From Macrostomum lignano (taxonomy: Eukaryota), in assembly GCA_002269645.1 (NCBI GenBank), contig NIVC01005184.1:1-23136 (forward strand): a stretch of DNA of 23,136 nucleotides, given 5' to 3'. Position numbers and translations under genes: made by a program. Of this stretch, positions 1 to 23,136 are shown in pieces; position 1 is the first letter of the stretch, and each line of letters opens with the position of its first letter. The notes below the pieces were generated by a model, which saw nothing but the letters and a program-made list of their open reading frames with translations, did no database searches and had not been told where the DNA came from.

Positions 1-3000
1 GTTATTGCAAAAAAGTTTATACATCGACCAATAATCGTACAAAAAAAATTATTTCGACAATTTCTGTAAGAAGCTGCTACTAAAACCACAAGAAAACTTG
101 AAATTGAGAAGAAATCAAGGCTATTTGTTATTCTTTGTTGCGGAAAATAAACGACAAAAATATTAAAGAGAAAATAAAATTTTCTTCTATTTTTATTTTA
201 AATATGCAGTTAAATTTCTTTTGGAAAAATAAAAGAACAAGAAATTGACAAAGGAAATGTTTTTGAGCACAGCATTTTGTTACTCTGCTCTAAATCCCAG
301 ACATTTAAAATTATCGTGTGCGAAAAAGTGCGAAATTATTATAGCATGCACTCGAAAGGACTTCGATCAGTTTAACTAATCACTGAATTAAGAAGTCTAA
401 ATAAGTCTTGAAAAGTTGAATTAAAAATCAAGTTTTCACTATGTATCTTTTCAAAGTCAAGATGATTCGACAAATAAAGAATGTTCATTTTTACGGTGAA
501 TAGAATTGTTCATTTTTACATTAAATATAATAAAATCTAACTAATAATAGAAAAAGTCAGGGAACTATCCTTGAACACCAAAAAGCACATTGTGGATTTA
601 ATATCAACTGCATGTTCCTTAATAAAGGAATTCGGATTCTAGTATATATTTGATTATTTGTAGCATAATTTCTGAAAACTATAACTTGCTTGATTTTACT
701 TTAAGTACTTATTACATTAATACTTATACCAAAGCTGCATGTACTTAAAAAAAAAATTATAGTTACTTATTAGACATTTTACTCCAATTAACTTAAAATA
801 ATTCAAATTTATTTTAATTAATTCATTTTTTTGAAACTTTTTGGAAAATAGACAAAATTGAATTATTTAATTACCAAAAACCTACTAGCTTAACTAAAAT
901 AGCAGTTAGTCTTTAAAAAAGATTTCACTTGTTAATTGAGAAAAATGAGGGTGTGCGAGGTGTAAAAATGCGAAAGAGCATGCAGGAAACAGAGAAAAAA
1001 AATGTAGGTAAAAGACACTGCACATGCACATAATATGATAACCAGACATAATGCGCACACTGAAACACCAGTAGCAATGACGCCCAAGCTTTTGATGATC
1101 ACAAGCGAAAAGGCAAAACCCAGCCATCAATCAAAGAAGTAGACTATAGCACGCATCTTGAGTGCATCACGCATTTTTTGCAGAGAAGCTCGAAAATTAA
1201 CATTGTATTCTGTGCACAACCACCAACTGCGACAGGGTCTGCCGGGGGATTTGTGGGCACGCGGTCGCGGATACAAATCGGAGGAGTCGCTGACCATTCT
1301 GAAATTACTAGCTAGTACATGTAATTTTGTGTATTAATATATTTAGCCCGCTTTATTTCTATGCTCTCGTCCGCCTCTCGTTAATGCATCCCCAGACTCA
1401 TGGAATAATCAAACTTATGATCGAACTATGCATGGCTTCCGTCCCTCGCTTTGAATCTCTCACCTCCCCATAGTTCCATCAACCTTACCGTAGTGGCTTC
1501 CTATGCAAAAATCATCCCTCCGCATCTTACACAGGCTACTTCAGGCTGTAGACTGTACTACACTATTAATTAGTTGCGCTAGGAATCTACATGTATTTTG
1601 CTCGCAGCGCAACGCGCTGCTCAAAGAAGTTTAGATCTATCTAGATATTCTAGTAATTTCAGGTTTGTCCATAGACTAGAGCTCATGAGATGAGAATTCC
1701 ATTAACTAGTACATTTAATATGAATGAACTGCGTGTGTGTGTGCTGTGCATACATATGTATAATATACGAGTAGTTTATGGGCCAAATTTTGTGTGGCAC
1801 AATTCTTGGCATCACTCAGCAGGCACAAGATGCAGTTAAGCAGCGCACGAAAATTCTACAAAAGAAATTGAGCCTGGTTGAGGTGATGCGAGGAGGCAGA
1901 TCCACACAATCTCAGTGAATACACCAGACTGCACCAGATACGAGTCCAGTCGAATGTGCGCACTGGTCTAAGCAGCACACGCATGTCCTTCTGACAATGA
2001 CGGCACCTAGCTTCGTCCAAGCCTTTGCCAGCGTCACTGACAGCGTCAATACTACCATGCAGTGCCACCTGCAGCACCGACAACGGCAATTCCTCCAGTT
2101 AGCCCACAACAGTGGCTAAACTGAGGGACATGGAACCTACCCGCAGAAGACACACACATACACACACAGCACCGGCAGCAGCACTCTGACAGCATAACCT
2201 AAAGCTCCATGAGCTCAGTTTTCAAGCATTGAAGAAGCAGAAGCAGTCATCTTGAATCCAGGGATCAGGAAGAGTGTTGCATGTCCGACATGTGCTGTTT
2301 CCGTGGCAAAAGGTGATGGAGCAAATTAATCAACACTTACTATCTAGCTCGTATTAAGACTAAAAAACTGAGGCAAGGTGGGATTAAACCAAAGAAAAGT
2401 TTTTACTATACTTTTTTTACCATGTACTTTTACTATACTTCTATAGTATAGTAGAGAGGTACTCTATTTAAATGCAGTAAGAAGTGAAACAAATTTATAT
2501 ATTTAATTATTAAAATTAAATTAATTCAAGGTAAATAACTAATTTAACCAATTTATTAGAAGTATTTAATATTTTAATAAATTGATTTTTATACCTTACA
2601 CGAAATAAGCTCTACATTCATTTCTTAGCTTGGGGCCCATCTGTATAAGGTCAGTTTCTTCAAAATGCTGATTAATTAATTAAGGCCTGTTGTCTTTACT
2701 TAAATTTATAAGGGCATCTTAGAAGTTAATATTACTATATAATACATGTATAATATTATTACTATATTATAATAATATAGTTGCAATTTTAATGACTATT
2801 GAATAAGTCTAAATGCTTCCCCTATTGACTCTAAATATATGGTATCTTTACCTTCAGAAAAAATTAGCATAGAATGACTTGATGAAAACAAAAAAAATCA
2901 TTTCGAGATACACATTTGCTGATCATTCAGGTCAAATTTCAAGGTCCAGTTTTGCACATGTTTCTCTGTAGCTTGGTTACAAGGATTTTAATAAAAATAT

Positions 3001-3829
3001 AATAAATATGTCCAATGTACTAACTGATACATAGCCAAATTGAAGTATTTTCAAAAACAAAAAAAATCATTTGCTCAGTTTACTTTACTGGATATCTGTG
3101 TAAAATTTCAGCTCAAAAGGTGCTCCATGGAGAATGCTAGTGTGGTTACAGGATATTTATTTTGTGCTTCAAAGTAGGAGTTTATTGCGATGCATGGTTG
3201 CTTTTAATTATTTTTATCAACAATAGTGCTCTATTTCATAACAATTTTTTACAAAAAGATAAAAAGACATGTTTTTCTAATTATCTGCATCAAAATGTAT
3301 CATTTTAAGCGCACATTCTAGACGTCAGCTGAAAAAATACATTTTGTGAGACGCAAAGAGGCTATCCCACCGGAAATGCTAGGCGTACAGTTAAGCGTCT
3401 ATAAAATCATTTATAGTGCAGTTTATTGAGCTTTAACAAAATCTTAAATTAAATTTATATAAGCTTTAATTTTAAATGTAATATAGCAAGGTTTCACACA
3501 ACAACAACTTTTTTTTAGCTACAGACATCTTGTAGTACCATAAAATTAACATCGGAAATGATTGAATTTGAATTTTTTCATCGCTAATTATCGCTTAATA
3601 CCACCAGATGATTAAAAAACACTTTTGCATGATAAAGTTTAACCCAAAATTATCTTTATTCACAGATAAAAGTGTCCTATTATTTTCAATATGGCAGTAA
3701 CAATAGTAAATGTTCGGAAAATTGTTAAAATTTTTGCTCCTCCAGAATTTGCGAACGACCCAAGATCGGTTTAGTAAAAAATAGTTGCTGAGCTGCAATT
3801 CTCGGCAAAATAACTACTATTGCTTTATA

Positions 3830-6800
3830 ATGGAAGGAAAGAGTATTGAAGATTTGATTCTTGAGCGATATGCTAATGAACTGAGTGCTGATCATTCCAT
3901 GTCAAAAAGAGTGGAACGCTCTCCATACCAGCTTCCTCTCGGTCACTCAAATATTTTATCTTCGTACAAAACTCAACAAGGGTCGTGCAGCTCGATTAGA
4001 AGCCACAGAACGCGCTCAACAAAACCTGTCAGTGAAAGGTCGCGGTCAACAGATATTGGAAGAGCACCACCGCACACTCCAACAAAGGAATCGGAGGCAA
4101 GTTTGAGACAAGCTCCTATACCTGCTAATAGGCGAAACAGTGGTTCCAGCGGACATTTTATGGCTAAAGGCTTAGAAAAAGACGAACTTGACTTGACTCC
4201 GCTACAAAATAGCCAAGATTTAAACTCCACGAAAGACGAATCTGCTCGTCATAGTCGTCTATCCACAGGTCGAAAAAAGACAAAGACAAGAGCTAGTTAT
4301 CTACTGAAGCCAGCAGTTTACGTCGTTAATGCATTCAAGAATGGAGACACTTCCACAAGCCACAGAGTTTCTGCGCCAAACTTTGAGAGGCTGCTTGAGG
4401 AGTGTACACAGCGTCTGCATTTACCATCTTCTGCAAGAAAGCTGTTTCTGTCTTCAGGAGCAGAAGTAACTAAAGACAGCATTTTGCCTAGAGGAATCGA
4501 TGTATTCGCATCTATGGGAGAGCCTTTTAAGGATCCATTAAAGATGTTTGAAAAGAAGCTCAGTATAAAGGCCGATATGCAGTGGACTCTCACTGGTCTA
4601 AATCTTCCAAGTGGTCGCGAGAAGGAGACAACAAAGCCGTTGATTGGTTCTACAAGATTGGAGGGAAACCGAGCAGCAAAGAGACGAATTCTAGCCTTTC
4701 CGAACGGTAAGGGCATTAAGGGCGTGGAGGTAATGGCTGATATGACCAACATGGAAGATTTCTTGCAGAGCTGCACTTTCAAACTTAAGTCCGGCCAGCC
4801 GTTCCGTCGTGTACTTCTCCTAGACGGCCAAGAAGTTACCAACTTGCACACTGTGCCAATGCTTCATCATTTCTTTAACTCATCCAGTGCACCACTTTTA
4901 GGCCCCGTGTGGCTCAGTAAGGGAGAAAATATCAGTCCAATGGGAGTAGAGGAGTACCTAAGAGATTCGATCGAATTTGTTGCAAGGCTAAAGTCGCAGT
5001 GCAACAAATACTTGGCACAGTTGAATGCTGCCTACTATTGTGACGACAGATCAAGTCTCGCCGGAGATCCCCAACTGACAGACAAGCGAATTCTGTCATT
5101 ATCAAAAAAGGAGTTAGAGCAGAAGATCGCCAAGGAAACTGAGAATCATGATGAATATGTTGCTTTCCTGACTGAGTTCAAAGCCAAAGTAAGAGCCGTC
5201 GAGCCCAAAGCGAGATCTGAGCTTGAGGAAGGCAGTCAGTTCACAATGAAACACATATCTGCGTTGCCTGAGAACCACAGGCTCGTCTCCGATAGACGTG
5301 GCATCCGACTAAAAGTCCACAACAACGGACGAGACTCCGATCCAGTCACTGTGTATTTCAACATGCGCGAGGCATCCAGAGGCCTTGGTAAAGACAGGGA
5401 CGGGACGCGAATAGTCTTCCAGCGTTTCCTGGACAGCTTGTCAGCTAATCCACAGTTGGCTGGCCAGAGCAGCAAGTCCAAAGGTACCCTCGTTCAGCGC
5501 ATCTTTACTAAGTCCGGTCAGGAGGTAACCGACGCTCTCACGCTGCAATACGATGATGAGATTTGGATCTCGCACGGTGAAAACTGGATTGACCCGTTCA
5601 CTTACTGCCTGCAGGCCGAGGTCAGCAGAATAACGGCGTGGAAAAAGGGGGCCGCCCGCTTTGCGGTCCGATCGGACATTCCGCACATTGACGACTCTCT
5701 GGAACGACCCTCGGCCTGGGATGCTCAATGGCAGCTTCCAGACGACGTCGAACAACTGACGCTTGAAGAAGATGAAGAAGAAGAAGCGGAGGAAGAATAT
5801 GTCTGCGACTTTGAAGATGAAGATGGCGAAGAGATTGCTGCGGCTGCACCTGGTGCAACAAAAGAACCCATCAAGCCTCCCGAAGGTTCAGTGCCGATAG
5901 AGAGCTGCTTCCTGCAGCATAGCCGAAATCGGAAACTGTGTCTCTTTGTCGAGCCCGTTGTCGGCGTCATGAAAGTGCCTCACGAGTCGGCGATAGCCAA
6001 GAGCGATGACCATCAACAGACTCGCCCTGTGCTGCCAGTCTGGCCAAAGGCAGGTATTGCGCAGTCGTGGGTCATTCACAAGTCAGGTCAAATATCTGTT
6101 AAAGGATTTCCCGGCCTTGCTCTTGCCGTCACTGACTACGAGATTGAAACTGACCTAAATGGAGTTCGAATTCGAGGCAGCTTAGTGCAGTTCTGTCCGT
6201 TCGAACGCGACGAGTTTCAGGTGCGCGCGTCGCAGCGGTGGATTTTCCACACAGACGGGCTCGTCTATTCCAAACAGTTTCCCGAGCTGGCGCTAACCTA
6301 TCTGGGTGGATCGATTGACGAGTTGAGCTCGTGTCCGAAGAATGAGCTCGATCGCGATTCTGGACATCGAAATCTTCTGGCAGTCTGTGAGCACCTGGAA
6401 TCTCGCCTAGCCAAGTACCAGCGATTCGGTATTCGACTGCAAAAGCTTGGCAACCTGAGCCAGCTGAGAAAGGCGGCGAGGTACAGGGACCCAGCCTGGA
6501 GCAAGTTGGCCATCGTGTGGCCTACCGATCAGCGGGGCCACTGGATCGAAGATTACGACTGGCCAATCGAAGGTCAAATTCTGACATTCGCGCCGCCATT
6601 AAAATACAAGCCTGAAGCGGAGCAGCGGAAACGATTGTTTTGCCTGAAGAACGGCGAGCGGAAGGAGGAAGTCGGGGTTTTCATAACTGCACCCGATCTC
6701 ACAAATATGAAAAAGGATCGCCAGCTGCTGAAGCGTCAGACAACAAAGACAAGACGAATCCGACATTCGTCTTTACTCAGCGACGCGGCCTCAACGGTGA

Positions 6801-7294
6801 CGGCTGACGAATTTCAGCCTGGCGAAACCGAGCAGAAAGTGAGTGAAGTGCAATTTCAAATCTTTCTGGAGTCCTGCACTACGAAGCTCGGACTGAACGC
6901 TGAGGCCAAAAGACTTTTCGACCGGAACGGGTTTGAGCACAAGTCCCTGAAGCAGCTGGAGAGCGATCAAGTAGTGTACATCTCGACCGGCGAGGATTGG
7001 ATTGATCCGAAGTTTACAAAGTCGCAGCTGGAAGCACGATCGCTACTTTCTAAGCTATCCGATGATGTCGACAAGATAAGGTGCTTTGTTGCCCTAAGAA
7101 AAAGCACTCAAAATTTGGCTCTAAGCACCGAGAGCTTGACCCCTAGTGCTCGAATCTGTGTCGTAAAGGACGCTTCTGTCGCTTCTGTCGACGACTCAAA
7201 CTATGCTGCTGCCGGCAGATTGGGTAACGGAGTTCGTGACAGCGAAGACGGCAAGCTCAACAAGCTCCGCTGGCCATGGGAAAGGATAGTTAGC
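3830..7294 (+). CDS. DCDC1: DCDC1/DCDC5-like doublecortin-domain protein, N-terminal part (DCX repeats 1-4 and a ricin-B-like region); first part of a giant exon, up to the frameshift
   Basis: Open frame 3785-7357 with ATG at 3830 in good context (ataATGG). DCX-like repeats with the pattern (V/I)xxxxNG...LxxCTxxLxL...xxGxxx...V(W/Y)xSxGExxxxP start at ~4313 (VYVVNAFKNG), ~4679 (KRRILAFPNG), ~5303 (IRLKVHNNG) and ~6626 (RKRLFCLKNG). QxW-type repeats at ~5900-6310 (QSWVIHKSGQI, QRWIFHTDGLVYSK). Motifs LLGPVWLSKGE, WSKLAIVWP and YDWPIEG match vertebrate DCDC1 as I recall it. Confidence 0.9.
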
Positions 7295-9497
7295 CCGAGT
7301 TTGATGATGGCGCTCCCAGGCGTCGCCGCTTCGGCAGTCGAGATGGCGATGCGCTGAAGCAGTTCGGCTACGAAGACGGCTACATCTATTCATTGGAGGA
7401 CTGCGGCCTCGTGCTGACGGCGGTCGACACTGGCGTCAAAAGCGGCCTGGAAGTTACCCTGCAGCGCCGGCGACCGGACAATGTCTATCAGCGTTGGCAG
7501 CTCAGCCCCAGCGGCTTCATCGTTTTAAAATACCAATCAGGCAGCGCGCTGACGTTGCAGCTGCCTAAAGTGTCCGCCTCCCAACCTGTGGACACCGAGG
7601 CCGCCGTATTGACTGTGCAACCGCAGGTTCCAAATCAGTTTGGTCGCGCGCATCAACTGTTTGCAGTCGATGAAGCCAGCAGTACAGTCAGATGCTTTGC
7701 CTCCAACCCATTAGACATTGCAGTTACTGTTGCTATTCACTGCGGCTGCTGTACAAGCAGTGTAGTGCTGCCGAAGGACTACGCAATTGATCAGCCAGGC
7801 TACACTGTGTACTTGCCTGTAGAACACCGATTGCAGAATTCGCGACGCGACGAAGCGCGGATGAAGTGCTGCGAGGTGTGCGCCGGCTGCGCCAAGTCGC
7901 TTCGTGGCCGCTACAAGCTGCAGAGGATCGGTGCGGCAGCGCGCGGCGCCGATTTTGCGTGCGCTTTCGCTCAGGCTGGCGCGCTCGGCCTGAAAGAGAC
8001 CGGCGCTTATCGCCTACTCGGCGGAAAGCTCGATCTCACAGAGGGTGAAGATGTAGCAACTCTGAGGCGATGGGAAAGCGAGCTGGAAGAGAGACGGCAA
8101 AACCTTTCACTGAAGGCGATCAACGAGCGACTGTCCGAGGCGCGAACTCCCCGCCCTATTCGAGTGCTGGCCTACCGCAACGGCGAGGGGCGCCAGCGGC
8201 CGCCAGTTCTTGCCACAGGTTCAAGCATTGCCGGCCTGATGGACCAGTGCACACTCAAGCTGAACACGGAAGAGCCAGTGCTGCGGCTGTTCCTTGAAGA
8301 CGGCACGGAGGTGCTTGAGATTGCTGAACTCCGTCGCTGGCGAAGCGCCAATGCTAAGCTGGTGCGCAGACGTCAGCGGGAGGTGGCGCGTCAGCGTGGC
8401 GCAGCTCCCAAGACTGAAGCCAGCAATGACGAGGACGATTCTCAAAGCGATGACGAGAATCAGACTCAACAAGCCAAGGAGGACGACCTCGAGCCGAGGT
8501 TGACGTCCAAATATTTCATAATCGGCTCAAAATTCGCGGCTCCCTCGGCTTACAACCTGGGCATCAGCCTGTACTCAATGAGCTTCTTGGATGAGATTCT
8601 GCCCGAGTCTGAGCAAACTGATGAAGCCAGACAGTTAGCGGTTAGGTACAGCATATTCGGCCAGACCCTCTGCACCGATCCATTTTCTAACGAGGAGACG
8701 TTCGAGGGAGAGAAGCGCGAGATCCTGGTCAAATCCGAGCTCCAGATTCTGCGCCGCTACTTCGGCGAGAAGTTTCGCCTGCTGAAACTGGACCTGATCG
8801 AGCTGACGCCGGAGGAGGAGTCTGTGCTGGCCACCTGCTACGTGCCGCTCGACAGTCTGATCCGCGAGGAGCACGAAGAGTTCATCAACTCAACCAAGAT
8901 GGCTGCTGACTATGCCTGGTACAGGAAGTCTGCCAGGAAGCCAAATGGCGAGAGAACTCACGCCTCGATGCACGTGGAGGTCAGCATCACCGTCTCGATT
9001 GACGTCGATGTCGACGACGACGACGATGAAGAAGAAGACGGAAAAAACGAAGACAAAGAGCAGCCGAGCAGCAAGAAGGATGAGGCCTCTGTTGAGGATG
9101 AAGACACCATCGTCGAGGTCTGGGCTTCCATCGGTGAAGATTTCGTGCACCCAAAGAAGGCGCCGCCCAGACGGTCGGGCGATGACGCAGCGGCCGCGGC
9201 CGCAGCAGTCGCCAACGCCACCGTCGGCCACGTCAGCCCGGAGCCGCGACTCGTGCGCCTTCGCGTCTACCCGAATGGTGAAAATCCAACGTCATCGGCG
9301 GTGACCATCTGGGCCGAGTCGGTGCCGCAGGCGCTTGAGAATGCCACCGCCAGGTTGGGGCTCCGCCGTCCCGGTCGGGTTCTCTACGATTCTGAAGGCC
9401 GCGAGCTGCACGACCCGCTGACAGAGCTGTCCTCTTCGAAGCTGCTGTGCTGCGTGTCTTCCGGCGAGCCCTTCCAGCCGCCGCCTTCGTCTAAGCG
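7294..9497 (+). CDS. DCDC1: DCDC1-like protein, second part of the giant exon (ricin-B-like repeats, Cys cluster, split DCX5 with C2-like insert, DCX6)
   Basis: Frame open from 7294 (after TAG 7291-7293): PEFDDG...KQFGYEDGYIYS...SGLEVTL...YQRWQL...IDQPGY...CCEVCAGC...IRVLAYRNG...IVEVWASIGEDF...RLRVYPNG...CVSSGEPFQPP. Ends at the predicted donor AAGCG|GTGGGT (9497/9498, phase 2). Confidence 0.85.
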
Positions 9498-9833
9498 GTG
9501 GGTTACAGAACTTGTTCGCTGTAAAATTACCACTTTACAGGCTAGCCTTTTAATGTAATCTCAGTTGGTCCCTGTAAGCTTTGGGCACTGCTATATGTAC
9601 GCACGCACAGACTCAGATAGGCACTTCTATCCACGTGACATTTTCTAATGTTAAGTCGATGGCCTGTAATTGGAGCAATAGCCTTGGAACACTTGCCCAT
9701 CTGAGCAATGGGCATATTGAGTTGATACTGCTCTGACGTCTAATATTGTAGGACAAATAGTCGTCCGACTGAGAGCCCATGAGAGCCAAAGTCAAGGCCG
9801 CTGTACACCCCCAGCTTACCCGCCAAATTTCAG
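9498..9833 (+). other. Predicted GT-AG intron (336 nt) in DCDC1-like gene
   Basis: Donor G|GTGGGT at 9498 and acceptor TTTCAG| at 9833. Of the nearby acceptors I checked, this is the only one that joins the phase-2 donor in frame (KR|PTSHH...) to the last DCX repeat. Composition drops to AT-richer sequence with stop codons inside. Confidence 0.65.
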
Positions 9834-10203
9834 CCCGACATCGCACCATTCTGCGCAGCCTCCGCCGCCGCCGCCAACATTCGACACGAAGCGTGTCCTT
9901 GTGAGCGCCAGGCGCGGCGACACCGGCGCCGTGACCGTCTGGGGCGACTCGCTGGAGGCGCTGCTGAAGGCGGCCACCCAGCGGCTGCGACTGCGCACGC
10001 CAGCGGTCAGTTTTTATCGCGCCGACGACGGCAGCAGGGTGGAGAGTTTTGCGGAAATCTCGCGCGACGAGCGCCTGCTGATCTCGGCGCCGTCCTCCTC
10101 CGTTGCGACTGTTGCTGGCGCTGCGGCCAAGGGGAACTCTCCAGCGCCTGGTGCTGCTTCAGTCACCAATACTACGCGTACTACTTTAGGTAGTGTCTGG
10201 TAG
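9834..10203 (+). CDS. DCDC1: DCDC1-like protein, predicted last coding exon (DCX7 and low-complexity tail)
   Basis: PPPPPPTFDTKRVLVSARRGD...VTVWGDSLEALLKAATQRLRLRTPA..FY..DG..VESFAEISRDERLLIS resembles the terminal DCX repeat of DCDC1. Stop TAG at 10201-10203. A possible donor G|GTAGTG at 10189/10190 could instead extend the gene. Confidence 0.75.
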
Positions 10204-10298
10204 CAGAAATTTGGCAAATGAATTTTATTGCATAAATTGCAATTGTTTTACTTATACCCTGAACTGAACTGTTGAATTAGATGGTTATTGCGCATCTA

Positions 10299-10648
10299 TA
10301 ATAATAATTTAATAACTGATTACACCTGCACTAATGGCCAGATGTGCAACCGACAGCTCAGCCGAGGTTATTGCGCGGCGCACTGCGCGGCTGCGTACGG
10401 CTGTTCAGTCCAAGGACTGGGGGGGGGGGTCGCCACACACACCCTAAATTACCCCAGCTAATGCTGGCACCCATTTTACAGCTGGGTGAACTGAAGCAAT
10501 GCAGAGTTAAATGCAGAGTTAATGCAGAGTTAAAAAAGCTCAAAGACACAAATTGTTCCAAGTGAGTTTAGGTGGAGAAAGGTGGAGAATCGAACCCCCG
10601 ACCTTTCAGTAGTCGTGAGTATAGGGTACGACCCCCCTACAGCTACAT
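10299..10648 (-). mobile_element. tRNA-derived SINE (~350 bp) with 8-bp target-site duplication CGCATCTA
   Basis: The minus strand begins ATGTAGCTGTAGGGGGG (A-box-like, 10634-10645) ... GAAAGGTCGGGGGTTCGATTCTCC (B box, 10586-10596). Central motif CACCCAGCTGTAAAATGGGTGCCAG (10464-10488). (TTA)-rich tail at 10299-10315. Identical CGCATCTA at 10291-10298 and 10649-10656. Confidence 0.8.
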
Positions 10649-11174
10649 CGCATCTACAACGACAGAAGCATATTCACCCAATTACTTGGCACCTCTGCTA
10701 TTCTATGTTACCTTATTTATACTACAGTGTATTTTGTCTTCAATGCTTTGCATGCTGCTAACACTATACTCAATATTTGCCTATCTGTGAATATTATACT
10801 CGTATTTTACTATTCTGATCGATAAAAACGCACAATTTCAACAACTCAGTAAATCCAGTTAATAACAGCATTCGTTGCCATATTGCAATTGATATAAAAT
10901 TGGTTATCCTTGTCGCACCTGCTGACAGAATTGATGTCTCTGCAGTCGTCAGGATTCTCTGCAACGCACTCCGCTTTGTAGTGAAGCGGCGCGATTTTGT
11001 TTGCTTTGTTTGTTTTGTTTGAAAATATATGACTAAACCATGGCTGTCTTGTTTTGCCGATGGTAGCACATCTCTGTCCTAACGTAAATACTATTTGTGA
11101 TATGCTACGAGTAGTGCGGACCGTTTTTTAATAGCTATTTTTCGTTGCAAGAAAGGAATGTAAAAGACTTTTAG

Positions 11175-12189
11175 GGTAGCTAGAGCTGGTAGCTAGAGCT
11201 GGTAGCTATAGCTGATAGCTTGAACTGGTAGCTAGAGCTGGTAGCTAGAGCTGGTAGCAAGAGCTGGTATCTAGAGCTGGTAGCTAGAGCTGGTATATAG
11301 AGCTGGTAGCTAGAGCTGGTATCTAGAGCTGGTAGCTAGAGCTGGTAGATAGAGCTGGTAGCTAGAGCTGGTAGCTAGAGCTGGTAGCTAGAGCTAGTAG
11401 ATAGAGCTGGTAGCTAGAGCTGGTATCTAGAGCTGGTAGCTAGAGCTGGTATATAGAGCTGGTAGCTAGAGCTGGTATCTAGAGCTGGTAGCTAGAGCTG
11501 GTAGATAGAGCTGGTAGCTAGAGCTGGTAGCTAGAGCTGGTAGCTAGAGCTGGTATATAGAGCTGGTAGCAAGAGCTGGTATCTAGAGCTGGTAGCTAGA
11601 GCTGGTATATAGAGCTGGTAGCAAGAGCTGGTATATAGAGCTGGTAGCTAGAGCTGGTATCTAGAGCTGGTAGCTAGAGCTGGTAGCTAGAGCTGGTATA
11701 TAGAGCTGGTAGCTAGAGCTGGTATCTAGAGCTGGTAGCTAGAGCTGGTAGCTAGAGCAGGTATATAGAGCTGGTAGATAGAGCTGGTAGCTAGGGCTGG
11801 TAGATAGAGCTGGTAGCTAGAGCTGGTAGATAGAGCTGGTAGCTAGAGCTGGTATATAGAGCTGGTAGCTAGAGCTGGTATATAGAGCTGGCAGCTAGAG
11901 CTGGTATATAGAGCTGGTAGCAAGAGCAGGTATATAGAGCTGGTAGCTAGAGCTGGTATCTAGAGCTGGTAGCTAGAGCTGGTAGCTAGAGCAGGTATAT
12001 AGAGCTGATAGATAGAGCTGGTAGCTAGAGCTGGTAGCTAGAGCAGGTATATAGAGCTGGTAGATAGAGCTGGTAGCTAGAGCTGGTAGCTAGAGCAGGT
12101 ATATAGAGCTGATAGAGCTGGTAGCTAGAGCTGGTAGCTAGAGCAGGGATATAGAGCTGGTAGATAGAGCTGGTAGATAGAGCTGGTAG
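11175..12189. repeat. 13-bp minisatellite (GGTAGCTAGAGCT)n, ~78 units with interspersed variants
   Basis: Directly visible tandem array. Variants include GGTATCTAGAGCT, GGTATATAGAGCT, GGTAGATAGAGCT and GGTAGCAAGAGCT. Confidence 0.97.
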
Positions 12190-12704
12190 GTTCATCACCT
12201 ATAAATAAAAGTTCCTAAAATGATCCAGACGACGCGTTTTGTCATGTCTCAGAGAAGTGTATTGTTCATTGTGAACAATTGTTCAGGCAATGAATTCACA
12301 TATCACGCCCTTAATCTTGCTAAAAATTCTACTTAGATTCAATCCCATTAGCAACCTTTTTTGTCCTCTGTGGATTATAGCCAATGCAAATTATTTCGCA
12401 GCGACCAGAAGTTGTTCGCACGATATGGGACACAGGACTCTCGTTTATCGGAGTCCTTGACTCTGGGCCGAGGCGAGCTCGAATTGTTATTATGCAAAAT
12501 AGGATCGGCTTTGAGTGGACAGGGTCGCGGACTTTGGGCCGGTCGTCCATGGGTTAGCGAAATTTGAATAAAAGTCTAATTGCATGCTTGGCACCGAGTG
12601 CTGCGTGTGCAGCCTGTGTGCTTTGCTTACCCGCGGCCTGTACATTTATTGCTTAACGGAATATTTACTCAGCATTCTGGGGAGTCATGAGTCTTGTGAC
12701 TTGT

Positions 12705-13010
12705 GAAGGCTTGTGACTGAGTCTAAGTCTAATTGCATTATGAAGGCTTGTGGCTGAGTCTAAGTCTAATTGCATTTTGAAGGCTTGTGGCTGAGTCTAA
12801 GTCTAATTGCATTATGAAGGCTTGTGGCTGAGTCTAAGTCTAATTGCATTTTGAAGGCTTGTGGCTGAGTCTAAGTCTAATTGCATTTTGAAGGCTTGTG
12901 GCTGAGTCTAAGTCTAATTGCATTTTGAAGGCTTGTGGCTGAGTCTAAGTCAAATTGCATTTTGAAGGCTTGTGACTGAGTCTAAGTCTAATTGCATTAT
13001 GAATGCTTGT
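12705..13010. repeat. 37-bp minisatellite GAAGGCTTGTG(G/A)CTGAGTCTAAGTCTAATTGCATT(T/A)T, 8 full units plus a partial ninth
   Basis: Unit starts at 12705, 12742, 12779, 12816, 12853, 12890, 12927, 12964 and 13001; head-to-tail with no spacers. Confidence 0.97.
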
Positions 13011-13410
13011 GACTGACTGACTGACTGACTGACTGACTGACTGACTGACTGACTGACTGACTGACTGACTGACTGACTGACTGACTGACTGACTGACTGA
13101 CTGACTGACTGACTGACTGACTGACTGACTGACTGACTGACTGACTGACTGACTGACTGACTGACTGACTGACTGACTGACTGACTGACTGACTGACTGA
13201 CTGACTGACTGACTGACTGACTGACTGACTGACTGACTGACTGACTGACTGACTGACTGACTGACTGACTGACTGACTGACTGACTGACTGACTGACTGA
13301 CTGACTGACTGACTGACTGACTGACTGACTGACTGACTGACTGACTGACTGACTGACTGACTGACTGACTGACTGACTGACTGACTGACTGACTGACTGA
13401 CTGACTGACT
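13011..13410. repeat. Perfect (GACT)100 microsatellite
   Basis: 400 bp of uninterrupted GACT. This accounts for the spurious (SQSV)n ORF 12945-13427. Confidence 0.98.
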
Positions 13411-13960
13411 ACTGTATTATTTTTCAAGATAGTGGTTTATCTCTATAGTATTATTTTTCAAGAAATTTTGACTTTATCACTAATTCATACATCGTTCTTG
13501 CACCAGTACTGTACAGTCCATGCAGTCCAACAATTCGCTTCACAAGCAGTCGTTAACCGCCTTAATAACCTGTCTAATTAACCTAGAACTTTATCCCAGC
13601 TTGTTAAGACTTGAACGTGATGCTGTGAAGAGAGAGAGGCTTGTGGAGCGAAAAGGAGGGAAAGCTCTGCACACCGCTCTTCAGTTCCTTGCTTCCTTAT
13701 TTGTGCAAGGGAGAGCAGTGGAGAGAAACGGGATTGAGAGGACTTTCTCGCCCTGAGCTCGAAGGGGGTTTAGGGCGGGTTTTGAAGGCAGGGGCGGTAC
13801 AAGTCAAACAGGCTTTTCATTCCGTCCTTTCTCAACAACACACAGCAACTTCTGAACTCGTTTTTAAAGCTTATTCCATCTTTTTTCGTAAAAATAAAGA
13901 ATTAAGCTCTAGAGAATACCGATGTCAGTGTGCGGAATCAGAGAGGGCGGAGTCCAGTCT

Positions 13961-14059
13961 GTGGGTCAGTAGGGTTGAAGTGGGTCAGTAAAGTTGAAGT
14001 GGGTCAGTAGTGTTGAAGTGGGTCAGTAGTGTCCATGTGGGTCAGTAGTGTCCATGTGG
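13961..14059. repeat. 19-bp tandem repeat GTGGGTCAGTAGTGT(TGAA/CCAT), 5 units
   Basis: Units start at 13961, 13980, 13999, 14018 and 14037; followed by GCCGAAGTG...GCCGAAAC. Confidence 0.9.
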
Positions 14060-14682
14060 TGCCGAAGTGAAAAGTGCCGAAACGGGAGGCGGAGGACGCC
14101 TTAAGAGAATAATGTGTGGGCCATAGGCATAAATAATAGATCTGTGATGGATCTAGAGAATAAAACTTTCTCTGTCAAAGTGACGCGATGAACTGAGGGT
14201 CAAAGGCACTAAAGTGCAGCCTGGCCATCATGAGCCGTTGCCAGCAGATCAGTGCAATTCGAGTTGCAGTTCCGGCAAAAATTGATCAATTTCATTTCTA
14301 TAGATAGCAGATGCGGGCCTCTGCACTTCTTTCTTGTAATTCTGGGTCTAAACAAACTCGTGAGCTAATCTCCAACGACACATTAAAGAAAGCCGGTTCG
14401 ATGCGTGGGCGGCTGCAGACTCTTGGCTGACATGGTGAACAAATGTGAGCAAGAAGAGATTGAATACCGAATTTCTGTACAAGAATGAGGATTCGATGAA
14501 ATGTGGACAGTCTAATGAGAATGTTGTTGGAAATGGTTTTTCTTAAAAGCTTTCTCAACTGCAGTTTCGTTATAGGCAGCCATATATGATGGATTAAGAA
14601 TTAATATAAGGTACTCGTATTAATGAGACTTTAAAGCTTCAGAATTGTAATATTATTACCATGGGTGTCTCCATGCTTGGGT

Positions 14683-14833
14683 GCAACCTTGGGATTCACT
14701 CGGCCGTTTCTATTGGCAACACACACATGTGTGTCGCTATTGGACAGAATAGTAGTCACGTGACTGCTCTCAGCCAATAGCGACTTACATGTGTGTGTTG
14801 CCAATAGAAACGGCCGGGTGATTCCCAAGGTAG
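14683..14833. repeat. ~150-bp near-perfect palindrome (MITE-like fold-back) centred on GTCACGTGAC
   Basis: The left arm CCTTGGGATTCACTCGGCCGTTTCTATTGGCAACACACACATGT is the near-exact reverse complement of the right arm ACATGTGTGTGTTGCCAATAGAAACGGCCGGGTGATTCCCAAGG. Inner arms GTCGCTATTGG / CCAATAGCGAC. Flanked by the direct repeat ATGGGTGTCTCC (14661-14672 and 14841-14852). Confidence 0.92.
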
Positions 14834-14862
14834 CGCATGTATGGGTGTCTCCCTGAATAGAA

Positions 14863-15387
14863 GGGTAGCAGGGTGTCATCGGGAGTAGCAAGGTGTCATC
14901 GGGGATAGCAGGGTGTCATCAGGGGTAGCAGGGTGTCATCAGGGGTAGCAGGGTGTCATCGGGGATAGCAGGGTGTCATCAGGGGTAACAGGGTGTCATC
15001 GGGGATAGCAAGGTGTCATCAGGGGGTAGCAGGGTGTCATCAAGGGTAGCAGGGTGTTATCGGGGGTAACAGGGTGTCATTGGGGGCAGCAGGGTGCCAT
15101 CGGGGGCAGCAGGGTGTCATCAGGGGTAGCAGGGTGTCATCGGGGATAGCAGGGTGTCATCGGGGGTAACAGGGTGTCATCGGAGATAGCAAGGTGTCAT
15201 CAGGGGGTAGCAGGGTGTCATCAAGGGTAGCAGGGTGTTATCGGGGGTAACAGGGTGTCATTGGGGGCAGCAGGGTGCCATCGGGGGCAGCAGGGTGTCA
15301 TCAGGGGTAGCAGGGTGTCATCGGGGATAGCAGGGTGTCATCGGGGTAACAGGGTGTCATCGGGGATAGCAGGTGTCATCAGGGTAG
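14863..15387. repeat. 20-bp G-rich minisatellite (AGCAGGGTGTCATCGGGGAT)n, ~26 units
   Basis: Visible tandem array. A 9-unit (181-bp) block is duplicated (diagnostic variant AAGGTGTCATCAGGGGG at 15010 and 15191). Degenerate units continue to ~15485. Confidence 0.96.
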
Positions 15388-17991: not shown

Positions 17992-18207
17992 CTTGTCGCG
18001 AATTCCCTGCCGCAGTTCCTCGCGCTCCGCCTCCATTTTCTGATGCTTCTCGTCGCGTTTTCGTTTCTCTTCAGCCAGAGCCTCGGCGATGGCGGCCGCC
18101 TCCTCGGCCTGCTTCTCGGTGTCCTCCGGATTGGCTTCCTCGCCGCCCATCTTTTTGACGCTATCCATCTGCTTGCCAACAAGCTGTTTGGCGATGAAAC
18201 CGGCCAT
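17992..18207 (-). CDS. cplx: Complexin, first coding exon (N-terminal domain, accessory helix and central helix; 72 codons)
   Basis: MAGFIAKQLVGKQMDSVKKMGG...EALAEEKRKRDEKHQKMEAEREELRQGIRDK is the canonical complexin/synaphin signature. ATG context ACAATGG. Confidence 0.95.
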
Positions 18208-18228
18208 TGTTTTGCTGCTTTGTAGGCA

Positions 18229-19400
18229 CCTGAAATTACCTGCTCAAAATGTTTCTTTGGCGTATTATTTGCGTCCTTTGAAAGACACTTTTCACCTCTA
18301 TCAGCGTCTAAGTGTGCTGTTTTCTGAACTCTTTATAGAGGGCCTGTGCGGCGTCAGTGCTTTGAGGCTAGGCGGCGGCAGCGGAGGAAGAGGAGGGGTC
18401 AGCCTCCGAGGGAGGGGGGAATGGGCGAGGAGTGCAGTGGCGGAGAACAGGGCTGGGCCAGCCGCAGAGATGCGATCCGATGAGAACCGGGGCCGGACGC
18501 GAAATAGTTTCCCCCGCGACCTGCGCACGCAACTTCGCCCGACCTCCATCTGTACCTCATCCCTCTCTTTCTCGCTCTAAGCCTCATTTCTTCCTCTCCG
18601 TTCAGCATCCTTCATGTTTCTTACCCTTTACCAAAAAGAGTCTTCGTTGCCTCCTATTTGGGTGGGGGGGGGGGCTGGAGCTGGGGCTACCACAGCAGGA
18701 GGTAGACGGGATTCCGTCTCGATGCCTTTCTCTCGCACTCACTCGCCGCAAACGCCTCGAGGTGGTACAAACGTTTGCCGCTCGCTTGCCTGTTCTCTCT
18801 CCCTCCTCACTATTCCTTCTCCCATTGGGAGCTGGGACTGGGATATTTGGATTAGGGAGGCGAGGGAGCGAGAGATACGGATAGATAGATGCAAGAGGAG
18901 CGAGCGCGCCCGAGGGGAGGGCAACAGAAACAGTTTGTACTCCTGCCTCCGTTCTTCCTCTACTCTCTTCCCTGCTCGCGCAGATCGATCGATGGCCGTC
19001 CGACTTCCCCCGCCGCCTCATCTGAAATCTCTCCCTCGCATTCAATGAGCACTGCTCCCCAGGGGCTGCGGACTTTTGAGTAGCCCCGGCCATGCCAATC
19101 GACGGGAGCTTTCCCAGACGGAAGGAGAGCAACCTGCGTGGGCAGGGGAACTGCGGGGATGAAGGGAAGACCTGCGAGAGAGAGGCTGCTGAGCACCGCG
19201 GAGAGGAGGCGCCGTGATGAGGATGACGGAAGAGAGAGAAGGAGAGAGAAGATCAAGTTAGAACTAGATCGCCTCAGAGGCGATGCCCTCCCCCTCCTCC
19301 AGCCTCCGCTCCTTCATCCTCACCTCTCTGTCAAGCCTCAGCCGAGTCCGAACGTTCCGGTTTCAGTTTTCTCCCTCGTGGCAAGCTGGCCAGCCCGACT
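18229..19400 (-). promoter_or_regulatory. Complexin 5' region: splice acceptor 22 nt upstream of ATG, probable non-coding 5' exon(s) and GC/GA-rich promoter-like island
   Basis: TTTCAG|GTGCC acceptor at 18230/18229. Candidate donors at 18624 (AAGG|GTAAGA), 18555 and 18295. CpG-rich sequence with GA/CT tracts at 18340-19400. The TSS cannot be placed. Confidence 0.45.
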
Positions 19401-19586
19401 CAGGCCCCTCCCTTGTTATCAATTCGATTATTATTGTCATGTTCGCTATCTTCTACTGGTTTTACTTAGTAGCGTAAATTGAATATTCTTCAAACAATTT
19501 TTCTTGTAGAGTCATCGTACCGGTTGAATTCTGTTCTCCAATGGAAATTTTATTTCTAGCTCGAATTTCTCGATGTACGAGTAATT

Positions 19587-22713: not shown

Positions 22714-22912
22714 TCGATGCGAGGTCATGGTGCGGCCTGTCAGCTGGAGTCACCAACAGCGTAACAGGTCGCTTGGACAGACCGAACCGTCTTGGTGATG
22801 CAGTGCCGCATAGCTAACTCTCTTGTAGCTGATCGTGAAGGCTGTGCGCAGCAGGCCAGCGTCCTGCAATCGCCTCCTAGCATCTGAAAATGAGGAGGAT
22901 CTGGAGAAGAGT

Positions 22913-22960
22913 GATTCGTAGGGCAGGATTCGTAGGCAGGATTTGTAGGCAGCGATTCGT
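22913..22960. repeat. Short 13-bp tandem repeat (GATTCGTAGGCAG)x3.5
   Basis: Units at 22913, 22927, 22940 and a partial one at 22954. Confidence 0.8.
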
Positions 22961-23136
22961 GGTCCAGGTTTGCTGGAGTGCAGGTTATTGCGGGTTGAAA
23001 GTTGGTCAAGAAACTGTATCCAAAGAATACGAATAGTCAAGCTACTTTGTACCAAAGAAGTCCTGCCAAGATTTGATGGCTCGCATACTCATTAAGAATT
23101 AGTCAGTAGCTAGTAGGGTGAATGAAAAAGCATAAC

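Follow-up and report, generated by a model that had tools for sequence, protein, structure and literature searches.

The contig NIVC01005184.1 of the flatworm Macrostomum lignano (assembly GCA_002269645.1), analysed here over 23,136 nucleotides (the window), carries on its + strand at 3830-10203 an orthologue of DCDC1, a protein with multiple doublecortin (DCX) domains. The reading that we favour, with somewhat better than even confidence, is that a whole domain resembling the second C2 domain (C2B) of CEP120 has been inserted in an enlarged loop of the fifth DCX domain (DCX5), where it hangs on tethers and would recruit a partner to microtubules. A C2 module is found at the identical DCX5 site in a second M. 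lignano gene, Mlig002406, referred to below as the paralogue; identities by segment are given relative to it, with ratios of non-synonymous to synonymous substitution (dN/dS) computed by the Nei-Gojobori method. As outgroup we used one hemichordate protein, the DCDC1-like isoform X2 of Glandiceps talaboti (1873 aa), which stands in for vertebrate DCDC1. The region of the insert is composed as follows (AlphaFold2 confidence is given as the predicted local distance difference test, pLDDT).

8155-8340, + strand: N-terminal part of DCX5, with strands 1-4 and the helix (match to Pfam family PF24478; 57% paralogue identity, dN/dS 0.28; AlphaFold2 pLDDT 78-90).
8341-8496, + strand: linker 1, 52 aa, consisting of a basic helix, WRSANAKLVRRRQREVARQ, with a helix in the hemichordate too, and then an acidic, poorly conserved stretch (29% paralogue identity with indels, dS saturated; AlphaFold2 helix, 56-82).
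8497-9009, + strand: CEP120 C2B-like C2 module (PF12416/DUF3668) of ~170 aa, with the Pfam envelope at nt 8509-9003 (Pfam, Protein Data Bank (PDB) matches and paralogue conservation; 69% paralogue identity, dN/dS 0.16).
9010-9108, + strand: linker 2, 33 aa, an Asp/Glu-rich tether of net charge -14 (27% paralogue identity, dS saturated; the paralogue's is 33 aa longer).
9109-9153, + strand: last strand of DCX5, IVEVWASIGEDFVHP, completing the split domain (alignment, joined DCX profile, AlphaFold2; 60% paralogue identity, dN/dS 0.20).

The gene falls into two long open reading frames (ORFs). ORF1 (3830-7357) is 100% identical to the GenBank protein BOX15_Mlig027318g1 of 1175 aa. In a Pfam scan it matched PF24478 (DCX2_DCDC1; 152.9 bits, E 3e-45) and PF25510 (Ubiquitin_DCDC1; 131.7 bits, E 1e-38), both over the curated cut-offs, as well as the classical DCX family PF03607 (E 2e-9). 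Its best relative outside Macrostomum is the Glandiceps 'doublecortin domain-containing protein 1-like' (E 1e-139, 86% of ORF1 covered), and that alignment continues collinearly through the second ORF (7393-9558, 721 codons), which continues the DCDC1 gene. The two above-threshold matches and the collinear alignment with a protein of a different phylum that bears the DCDC1 name place the gene in the DCDC1 orthologue group.

DCX5 opens at 8155-8340, which reads PIRVLAYRNG...LFLEDGTEVLEIAELRRW, and its last strand follows only at 9109-9153. The gap between them, 768 nt or 256 stop-free codons, agrees with the distance of about 255 residues given in the original prediction, which had been made from the letters of the window, and the whole of 8155-9153 is a single open frame within the 721-codon ORF. 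The insertion loop follows the 'EDGTEV' strand and precedes the last strand of the domain, and it is at the start of the insert that the PF24478 match of the N-terminal part breaks off, at profile position 72-75 of 105. The N-terminal half alone matched positions 13-72 of this profile (3-75 in another scan), with 32.7 bits at 13-72; when it was joined to the distal strand, a check suggested with the prediction, the match reached 13-98 of 105 and the score rose to 36.2 bits. AlphaFold2 modelled 8155-9153 from a three-sequence alignment with pLDDT 78-90 over residues 1-70 and ~80-90 over the distal strand (320-325), a confidence that is plausible only if this strand packs into the DCX sheet. Both the paralogue and the hemichordate orthologue align on either side of the insert, and the counterparts of the last strand read VVVELWASTGEAFVPL in the former and IEVWISSGEPFVKP in the latter. 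Profile, structure prediction and conservation all point to a complete DCX beta-grasp made of 8155-8340 and 9109-9153. DCX5 is evidently split by the insert, with both halves predicted still to fold together, and the proposal that the module is nested in DCX5 has been borne out by the flanking alignments, the gain of the joined profile and the AlphaFold2 model of both halves. Foldseek comparison of the DCX5-plus-insert model with the PDB gave nothing beyond weak matches of the DCX part to CIDE-N, a beta-grasp (E at least 0.28), and a PDB search with the hemichordate DCDC1 found no solved DCDC1 relative.

The hemichordate DCX5 is also split by an extra loop. It begins with the same basic helix and comprises ~63 aa that are not C2, compared with the 256-300 aa and the C2 module of the flatworm loops; the hemichordate protein has no PF12416 match at E <= 1. 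The alignment thus indicates that the ancestral DCX5 loop was already enlarged and that the C2 entered its disordered part, downstream of the basic helix. The DCX beta-grasp would therefore tolerate insertion of a whole domain in its last loop. As a separate observation, a loop of DCX4 (6707-6844) carries ~46 basic and Ser/Thr-rich residues between the first strands and the helix, so that the DCX domains of DCDC1 seem generally tolerant of loop expansion.

The identity of the insert was established from profiles. PF12416 (DUF3668, 'Cep120 protein'), a model of 176 positions with a curated gathering cut-off of 26 bits, matched the window insert with 31.1-34.8 bits (E 2e-8 to 3e-7) over positions 11-171, which correspond to the 8509-9003 envelope, or 26-172; it was the sole Pfam family to match this stretch when ORF2 and three sub-segments were scanned. 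The paralogue copy scored still higher (44.1-50.2 bits, E 4e-13, positions 9-172). With a score over the cut-off and nearly the full model covered, the match is, on this comparison, not due to chance. When all PDB sequences were searched with phmmer, only CEP120 entries (6EWG, 6EWH and 6EWI) fell under E = 0.1; the single sequence gave E 0.018 at best, and a two-paralogue profile improved these chains to E 5e-4. All three represent C2B of Oreochromis niloticus CEP120 (Joseph et al. 2018, PMC5990496); C2A and C2C, solved in the same study, gave no match in the PDB sequence searches. Neither the classical C2 family PF00168 nor any other C2-clan model matched the module, at E <= 1 in one Pfam scan or at E <= 10 in another. 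These results support, at the level of sequence comparison, the assignment of the insert as a CEP120 C2B-like C2 module, in line with the CEP120-type C2 originally predicted. Every peptide named in that prediction is present at its coordinates, with five beta-like segments within 8545-9000; the limits of 8545-9000 proposed for the C2 were roughly right, if slightly too narrow on the 5' side, the block conserved in the paralogue being 8497-9009.

When this block was searched exhaustively with phmmer against 1.84 billion cluster representatives, the M. lignano paralogue cluster emerged as its one genuine relative. The other match, to query residues 132-155, was a 340-aa tandem-repeat protein, which we dismissed as a repeat artefact. 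The paralogue is BOX15_Mlig002406g1/g2 (PAA59223.1, PAA60311.1, UniRef100_A0A267ECB7), with a near-identical third copy, g3 (PAA58558.1). This full-length DCDC1 shares ~47-52% identity overall with the window gene, and its C2, at residues 1572-1740 of 2151, is 69% identical over all 171 query residues. The 90% cluster of the paralogue also holds UniRef100_A0A1I8H5P1, a 3183-aa 'SAM domain-containing protein' that is probably a fused model from an older M. lignano assembly.

Conservation along the DCX5-insert region is distinctly uneven, with the C2 core its best-conserved segment. In the three conserved segments (DCX5 N-terminal part, C2 and last strand) dS is ~1.25, so that the duplication is old relative to the near-identical g1-g3 copies. 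All length differences from the paralogue, linkers included, preserve the frame, and the G+C content at third codon positions of the insert (0.61-0.75) is as high as that of DCX5. The conservation of the C2, its low dN/dS and the in-frame lengths mark it as a conserved coding domain rather than loop filler or intron; the substitution pattern indicates purifying selection on the protein sequence of the nested C2. Alternatively, 8341-9108 could be an intron retained in frame, or an alternative exon that the main mRNA lacks, and the poorly conserved, low-complexity linkers would suit such a sequence. We regard this as extremely improbable, given the selection on the C2 core, the frame-keeping lengths, the third-position composition and the coding sequence of Mlig002406, which is annotated as one uninterrupted 6456-nt exon that includes the insert. 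This single-exon gene differs from the window gene with its apparent 3' intron; retroposition or wholesale intron loss may explain the intronless DCDC1.

How might such a protein work? In CEP120, tubulin binding lies in C2A, and C2B does not contribute to it; C2B is critical for stability and has centrosomal and ciliary proximity partners (PMC5990496). In human cells, CEP350, centrobin, CP110, TALPID3 and KIF24 are among its proximity candidates. By analogy, we propose that the DCX array would hold the flatworm protein on microtubules while the C2B-like module, hanging from DCX5 on two flexible and largely acidic linkers, would serve as a protein-docking surface that brings a partner to microtubules decorated with DCDC1. 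As the CEP120 C2B would suggest, this partner may be a factor in centriole or cilium assembly, and a link to centrioles or cilia is accordingly possible; the module itself would not be expected to bind tubulin, Ca2+ or membranes. The module has a net charge of -9 (-5 in the paralogue) and an isoelectric point of 4.9-5.4, and linker 2, at net -14, is even more acidic in the paralogue (-17). Acidic module and acidic tethers together argue against binding to anionic lipids or to the acidic microtubule surface, and the tethers may also hold the module away from the microtubule lattice, itself acidic. The acidity, the lack of a PF00168 match and the likeness to C2B thus favour docking of a protein over binding of lipid or tubulin.

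Many C2 domains bind phospholipids, and the module could instead bind membrane or tubulin itself, either coupling the DCX array to vesicles or the ciliary membrane or adding a tubulin contact like that of C2A. The C2A of CEP120 does bind tubulin (PMC5990496), and DCDC5/DCDC1 of vertebrates has been tied to dynein and to Rab8 vesicles at the midbody (Kaplan and Reiner 2011, as cited in PMC3899981). We nevertheless consider direct binding of this kind improbable. The module matches no PF00168 or other C2-clan model, its acidity is unfavourable for anionic lipids and for the microtubule surface, and its only solved relatives are C2B rather than C2A or C2C, with C2B suggested to lack tubulin activity (PMC5990496). 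For the same reasons, acidity and the missing classical C2 match, the membrane coupling proposed in the original prediction appears less likely than protein docking.

Several findings count against the docking interpretation. Similarity to the solved C2B is weak (18-23 bits) and covers only the first half of the domain, ~85 residues, and the exhaustive phmmer search found no CEP120 protein at E < 1e-3; the module is thus only distantly related to CEP120 and does not represent a recent duplicate of the CEP120 that the worm itself has. AlphaFold, run on the C2 with alignments of 2-3 sequences, gave pLDDT 25-45 within DCX5 plus insert and 35 for the C2 alone, which is no confident fold, so that the beta-sandwich is predicted from sequence profiles only. 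Partner recruitment we infer solely by analogy, and our literature search found no expression, localisation or binding data for Mlig027318 (the window gene) or Mlig002406. Finally, the window copy lacks ~90 residues (KHxLxxMQGRR ... NPVxVEGGW) between DCX5 and DCX6, at ~9153-9250; together with a frame break at 7293-7357, this means that it may not make a full-length protein.

The results on similarity and fold could mean that the segment is no C2 at all and that the DCX5 loop has instead become elaborated into a beta-rich, fast-evolving sequence, matching PF12416 by chance or convergence. Such a loop would be consistent with the short PDB alignment, with the absence of CEP120 from the phmmer results, with the unconfident AlphaFold2 model and with a Foldseek search of that model that was uninformative. 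We judge this very unlikely. The copies of both paralogues, 69% identical to each other, score over the curated cut-off, between positions 9 and 172 of 176 and with E down to 4e-13; CEP120 C2B chains are the only PDB matches under E = 0.1 and improve with the two-sequence profile; and a low pLDDT is what would be expected from an alignment of only 2-3 sequences.

The state of the gene copy raises another possibility, that Mlig027318 is a decaying duplicate or pseudogene relic and that the nested C2 functions only in Mlig002406. Directly behind the conserved WPWER motif (7271-7285), within 7293-7357, the reading frame shifts by -1, at a point where the paralogue reads straight through. The break is identical in a second contig of the assembly, NIVC01000281.1, whose 3' end matches window 1-15145 with 99.5% identity. 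GenBank annotates only the 5' ORF, 1175 aa to the stop at 7355-7357, and NIVC01000281.1 has no gene call over ORF2, so that the 3' ~40% of the gene, C2 module included, is unannotated. The missing DCX5-DCX6 segment is conserved from the paralogue (aa 1820-1935) to the hemichordate, with an Ala-rich stretch here in its place, and stops interrupt the region after DCX6.

On the other hand, 721 codons remain open past the frame break, the window C2 is the best-conserved segment of its region with dN/dS 0.16, and the stops past 9501 are consistent with a GT-AG intron. Across the DCDC1 gene the two contigs show only seven differences, of which three are single-base indels. Single-base indels set the window and NIVC01000281.1 apart at 3743, 9439 and 9808; the one at 9439, upstream of the conserved DCX6 end (VSSGEPF, 9454-9474), would put that end out of frame in NIVC01000281.1. 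Indel errors or polymorphism thus occur in these assemblies, and the frame break may be a real 1-nt deletion or an assembly error. A 44-nt micro-intron at the break was also considered. The sole GT-AG pair of the right phase, 7299-7342, is ~64% GC and has no pyrimidine tract, and we rate it less likely than a 1-nt indel. Between assembly error and incipient pseudogenisation of the window copy we take neither side; that the copy is a relic we see as possible, though rather doubtful. The gene model has to be mended at a single frame break.

With the docking interpretation retained as the preferred one, the architecture can be compared with those already known. The module resembles CEP120 C2B in its match to PF12416 across nearly the full model, in being matched under E = 0.1 in the PDB by that domain alone, in a shared 'F/YSxxGxxxxTxPF' motif and in having hydrophobic residues (Ile and Met, read from the phmmer PDB alignment) at the core positions that correspond to the disease residues V195 and A200. 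It differs from C2B in its very low sequence similarity to the solved chain. A CEP120 orthologue would have three tandem C2 domains and then a coiled coil (PMC5990496), whereas the flatworm protein is a DCDC1 with a single module that sits in a DCX domain, outside any C2A-C2B-C2C array and with no C-terminal coiled coil. Classical C2 domains (PF00168, as in synaptotagmin, PKC and PLC-delta) presumably share the beta-sandwich fold class, CEP120 C2 domains having the PLC-delta1-like topology II (PMC5990496); the flatworm module differs from them in being acidic and in having no match to their profile, and nothing in its sequence points to Ca2+ or lipid binding. In deuterostome DCDC1 (formerly DCDC5/FLJ46154; here Glandiceps), DCX domains, QxW regions, WPWER motif and Cys-rich segment follow one another as they do in the flatworm protein. 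Mlig002406 differs from the window copy in its intact 2151 aa, in retaining the DCX5-DCX6 linker and in its longer second linker.

The distribution of the insert suggests that it arose within the flatworms. Word-indexed homology searches found no match with 8155-9153 and the paralogue only with a four-row alignment that included a CEP120 C2B fragment. These sequences date the insertion to a time before the two M. lignano paralogues diverged, and the hemichordate orthologue lacks it. Our best explanation includes, as one part, that the architecture is lineage-restricted and that the CEP120 C2B-like domain was gained in the flatworm lineage. More speculatively, a macrostomid microtubule-lattice binder may have captured a CEP120 C2B-like docking module and so brought C2B partners to non-centriolar or ciliary microtubules. 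We think this unlikely as it stands; if true, it would mean that ciliogenesis or the organisation of cortical microtubules was rewired in this lineage specifically, and no functional domain nested within a DCX fold would have been documented before.

The original prediction described the architecture as one not known from the literature. We found no paper linking DCDC1 with a C2 or DUF3668 domain or naming these Mlig genes, and a 2006 survey of the DCX superfamily lists kinase and ricin as the only partner domains; yet three GenBank/UniProt records of the Mlig002406 paralogue already list a precomputed PF12416 match. A C2B-type module in a DCX loop is thus undescribed in papers, while sitting uncommented in three database records. 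Each kind of domain is known by itself, DCX as well as CEP120 C2, and each has ties to microtubules, centrioles and cilia. If the module keeps the partner specificity of C2B, it would offer a natural experiment on the role of this domain in the ciliopathy protein CEP120. M. lignano is a tractable model in which RNA interference and transgenesis are available.

Outside the DCX5 region, the gene is laid out as follows.

3830-7292, + strand: 5' part of the DCDC1 coding sequence, with DCX1, DCX2, DCX3/ubiquitin-like, a first QxW beta-trefoil-like region, DCX4 and the WPWER motif (Pfam, ORF1 identity; tblastn with the paralogue spans 3830-7303).
7293-7357, + strand: interval with the -1 frame break between the long ORFs (three-frame translation, sequence, paralogue).
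7358-8154, + strand: second QxW beta-trefoil-like region, Cys-rich CxxC segment and coiled linker into DCX5 (alignment with the Glandiceps DCDC1-like protein and the paralogue).
9250-9501, + strand: DCX6, to a probable splice donor, TGG/GTTACA, at 9501/9502 (paralogue and hemichordate alignment; the donor itself is putative).
9502-9858, + strand: probable 357-nt, AT-richer GT-AG intron containing the in-frame stop 9556-9558, its boundaries placed solely from the frame and the GT/AG positions.
9859-10203, + strand: last exon, with DCX7 and the stop codon (translation; paralogue aa 2071-2139 align to 9880-10086 at 54% identity; weak DCX matches).

QxW motifs occur at 6062, 6233 and 7489 (QSW, QRW and QRW), in regions that align with the hemichordate protein. 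No Pfam ricin match at E <= 1, as for a ricin-B-type beta-trefoil, was obtained in the regions of DCDC1 presumed to be ricin-like.

Elsewhere in the window, the sequence at 18089-19482 (both strands) and 22750-23055 (- strand) is GC-rich (0.57) and holds overlapping ORFs of 100-176 codons in different frames. The ORFs at 13.6 kb, 18-19.5 kb and 22.8 kb had no Pfam matches, and the GC-rich stretch may represent a repeat, what is left of a transposon, or a gene that has gone unrecognised. Downstream of DCDC1, 11175-15384 is a block of tandem arrays with a strong skew of G over C: a 13-mer repeated 78 times (11175-12189), a 37-mer repeated 8.5 times (12704-13016), (TGAC) repeated 101 times (13010-13414) and a G-rich 20-mer repeated 26 times (14861-15384). 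The contig NIVC01000281.1 ends inside this block, at about 15145-15326 of the window.

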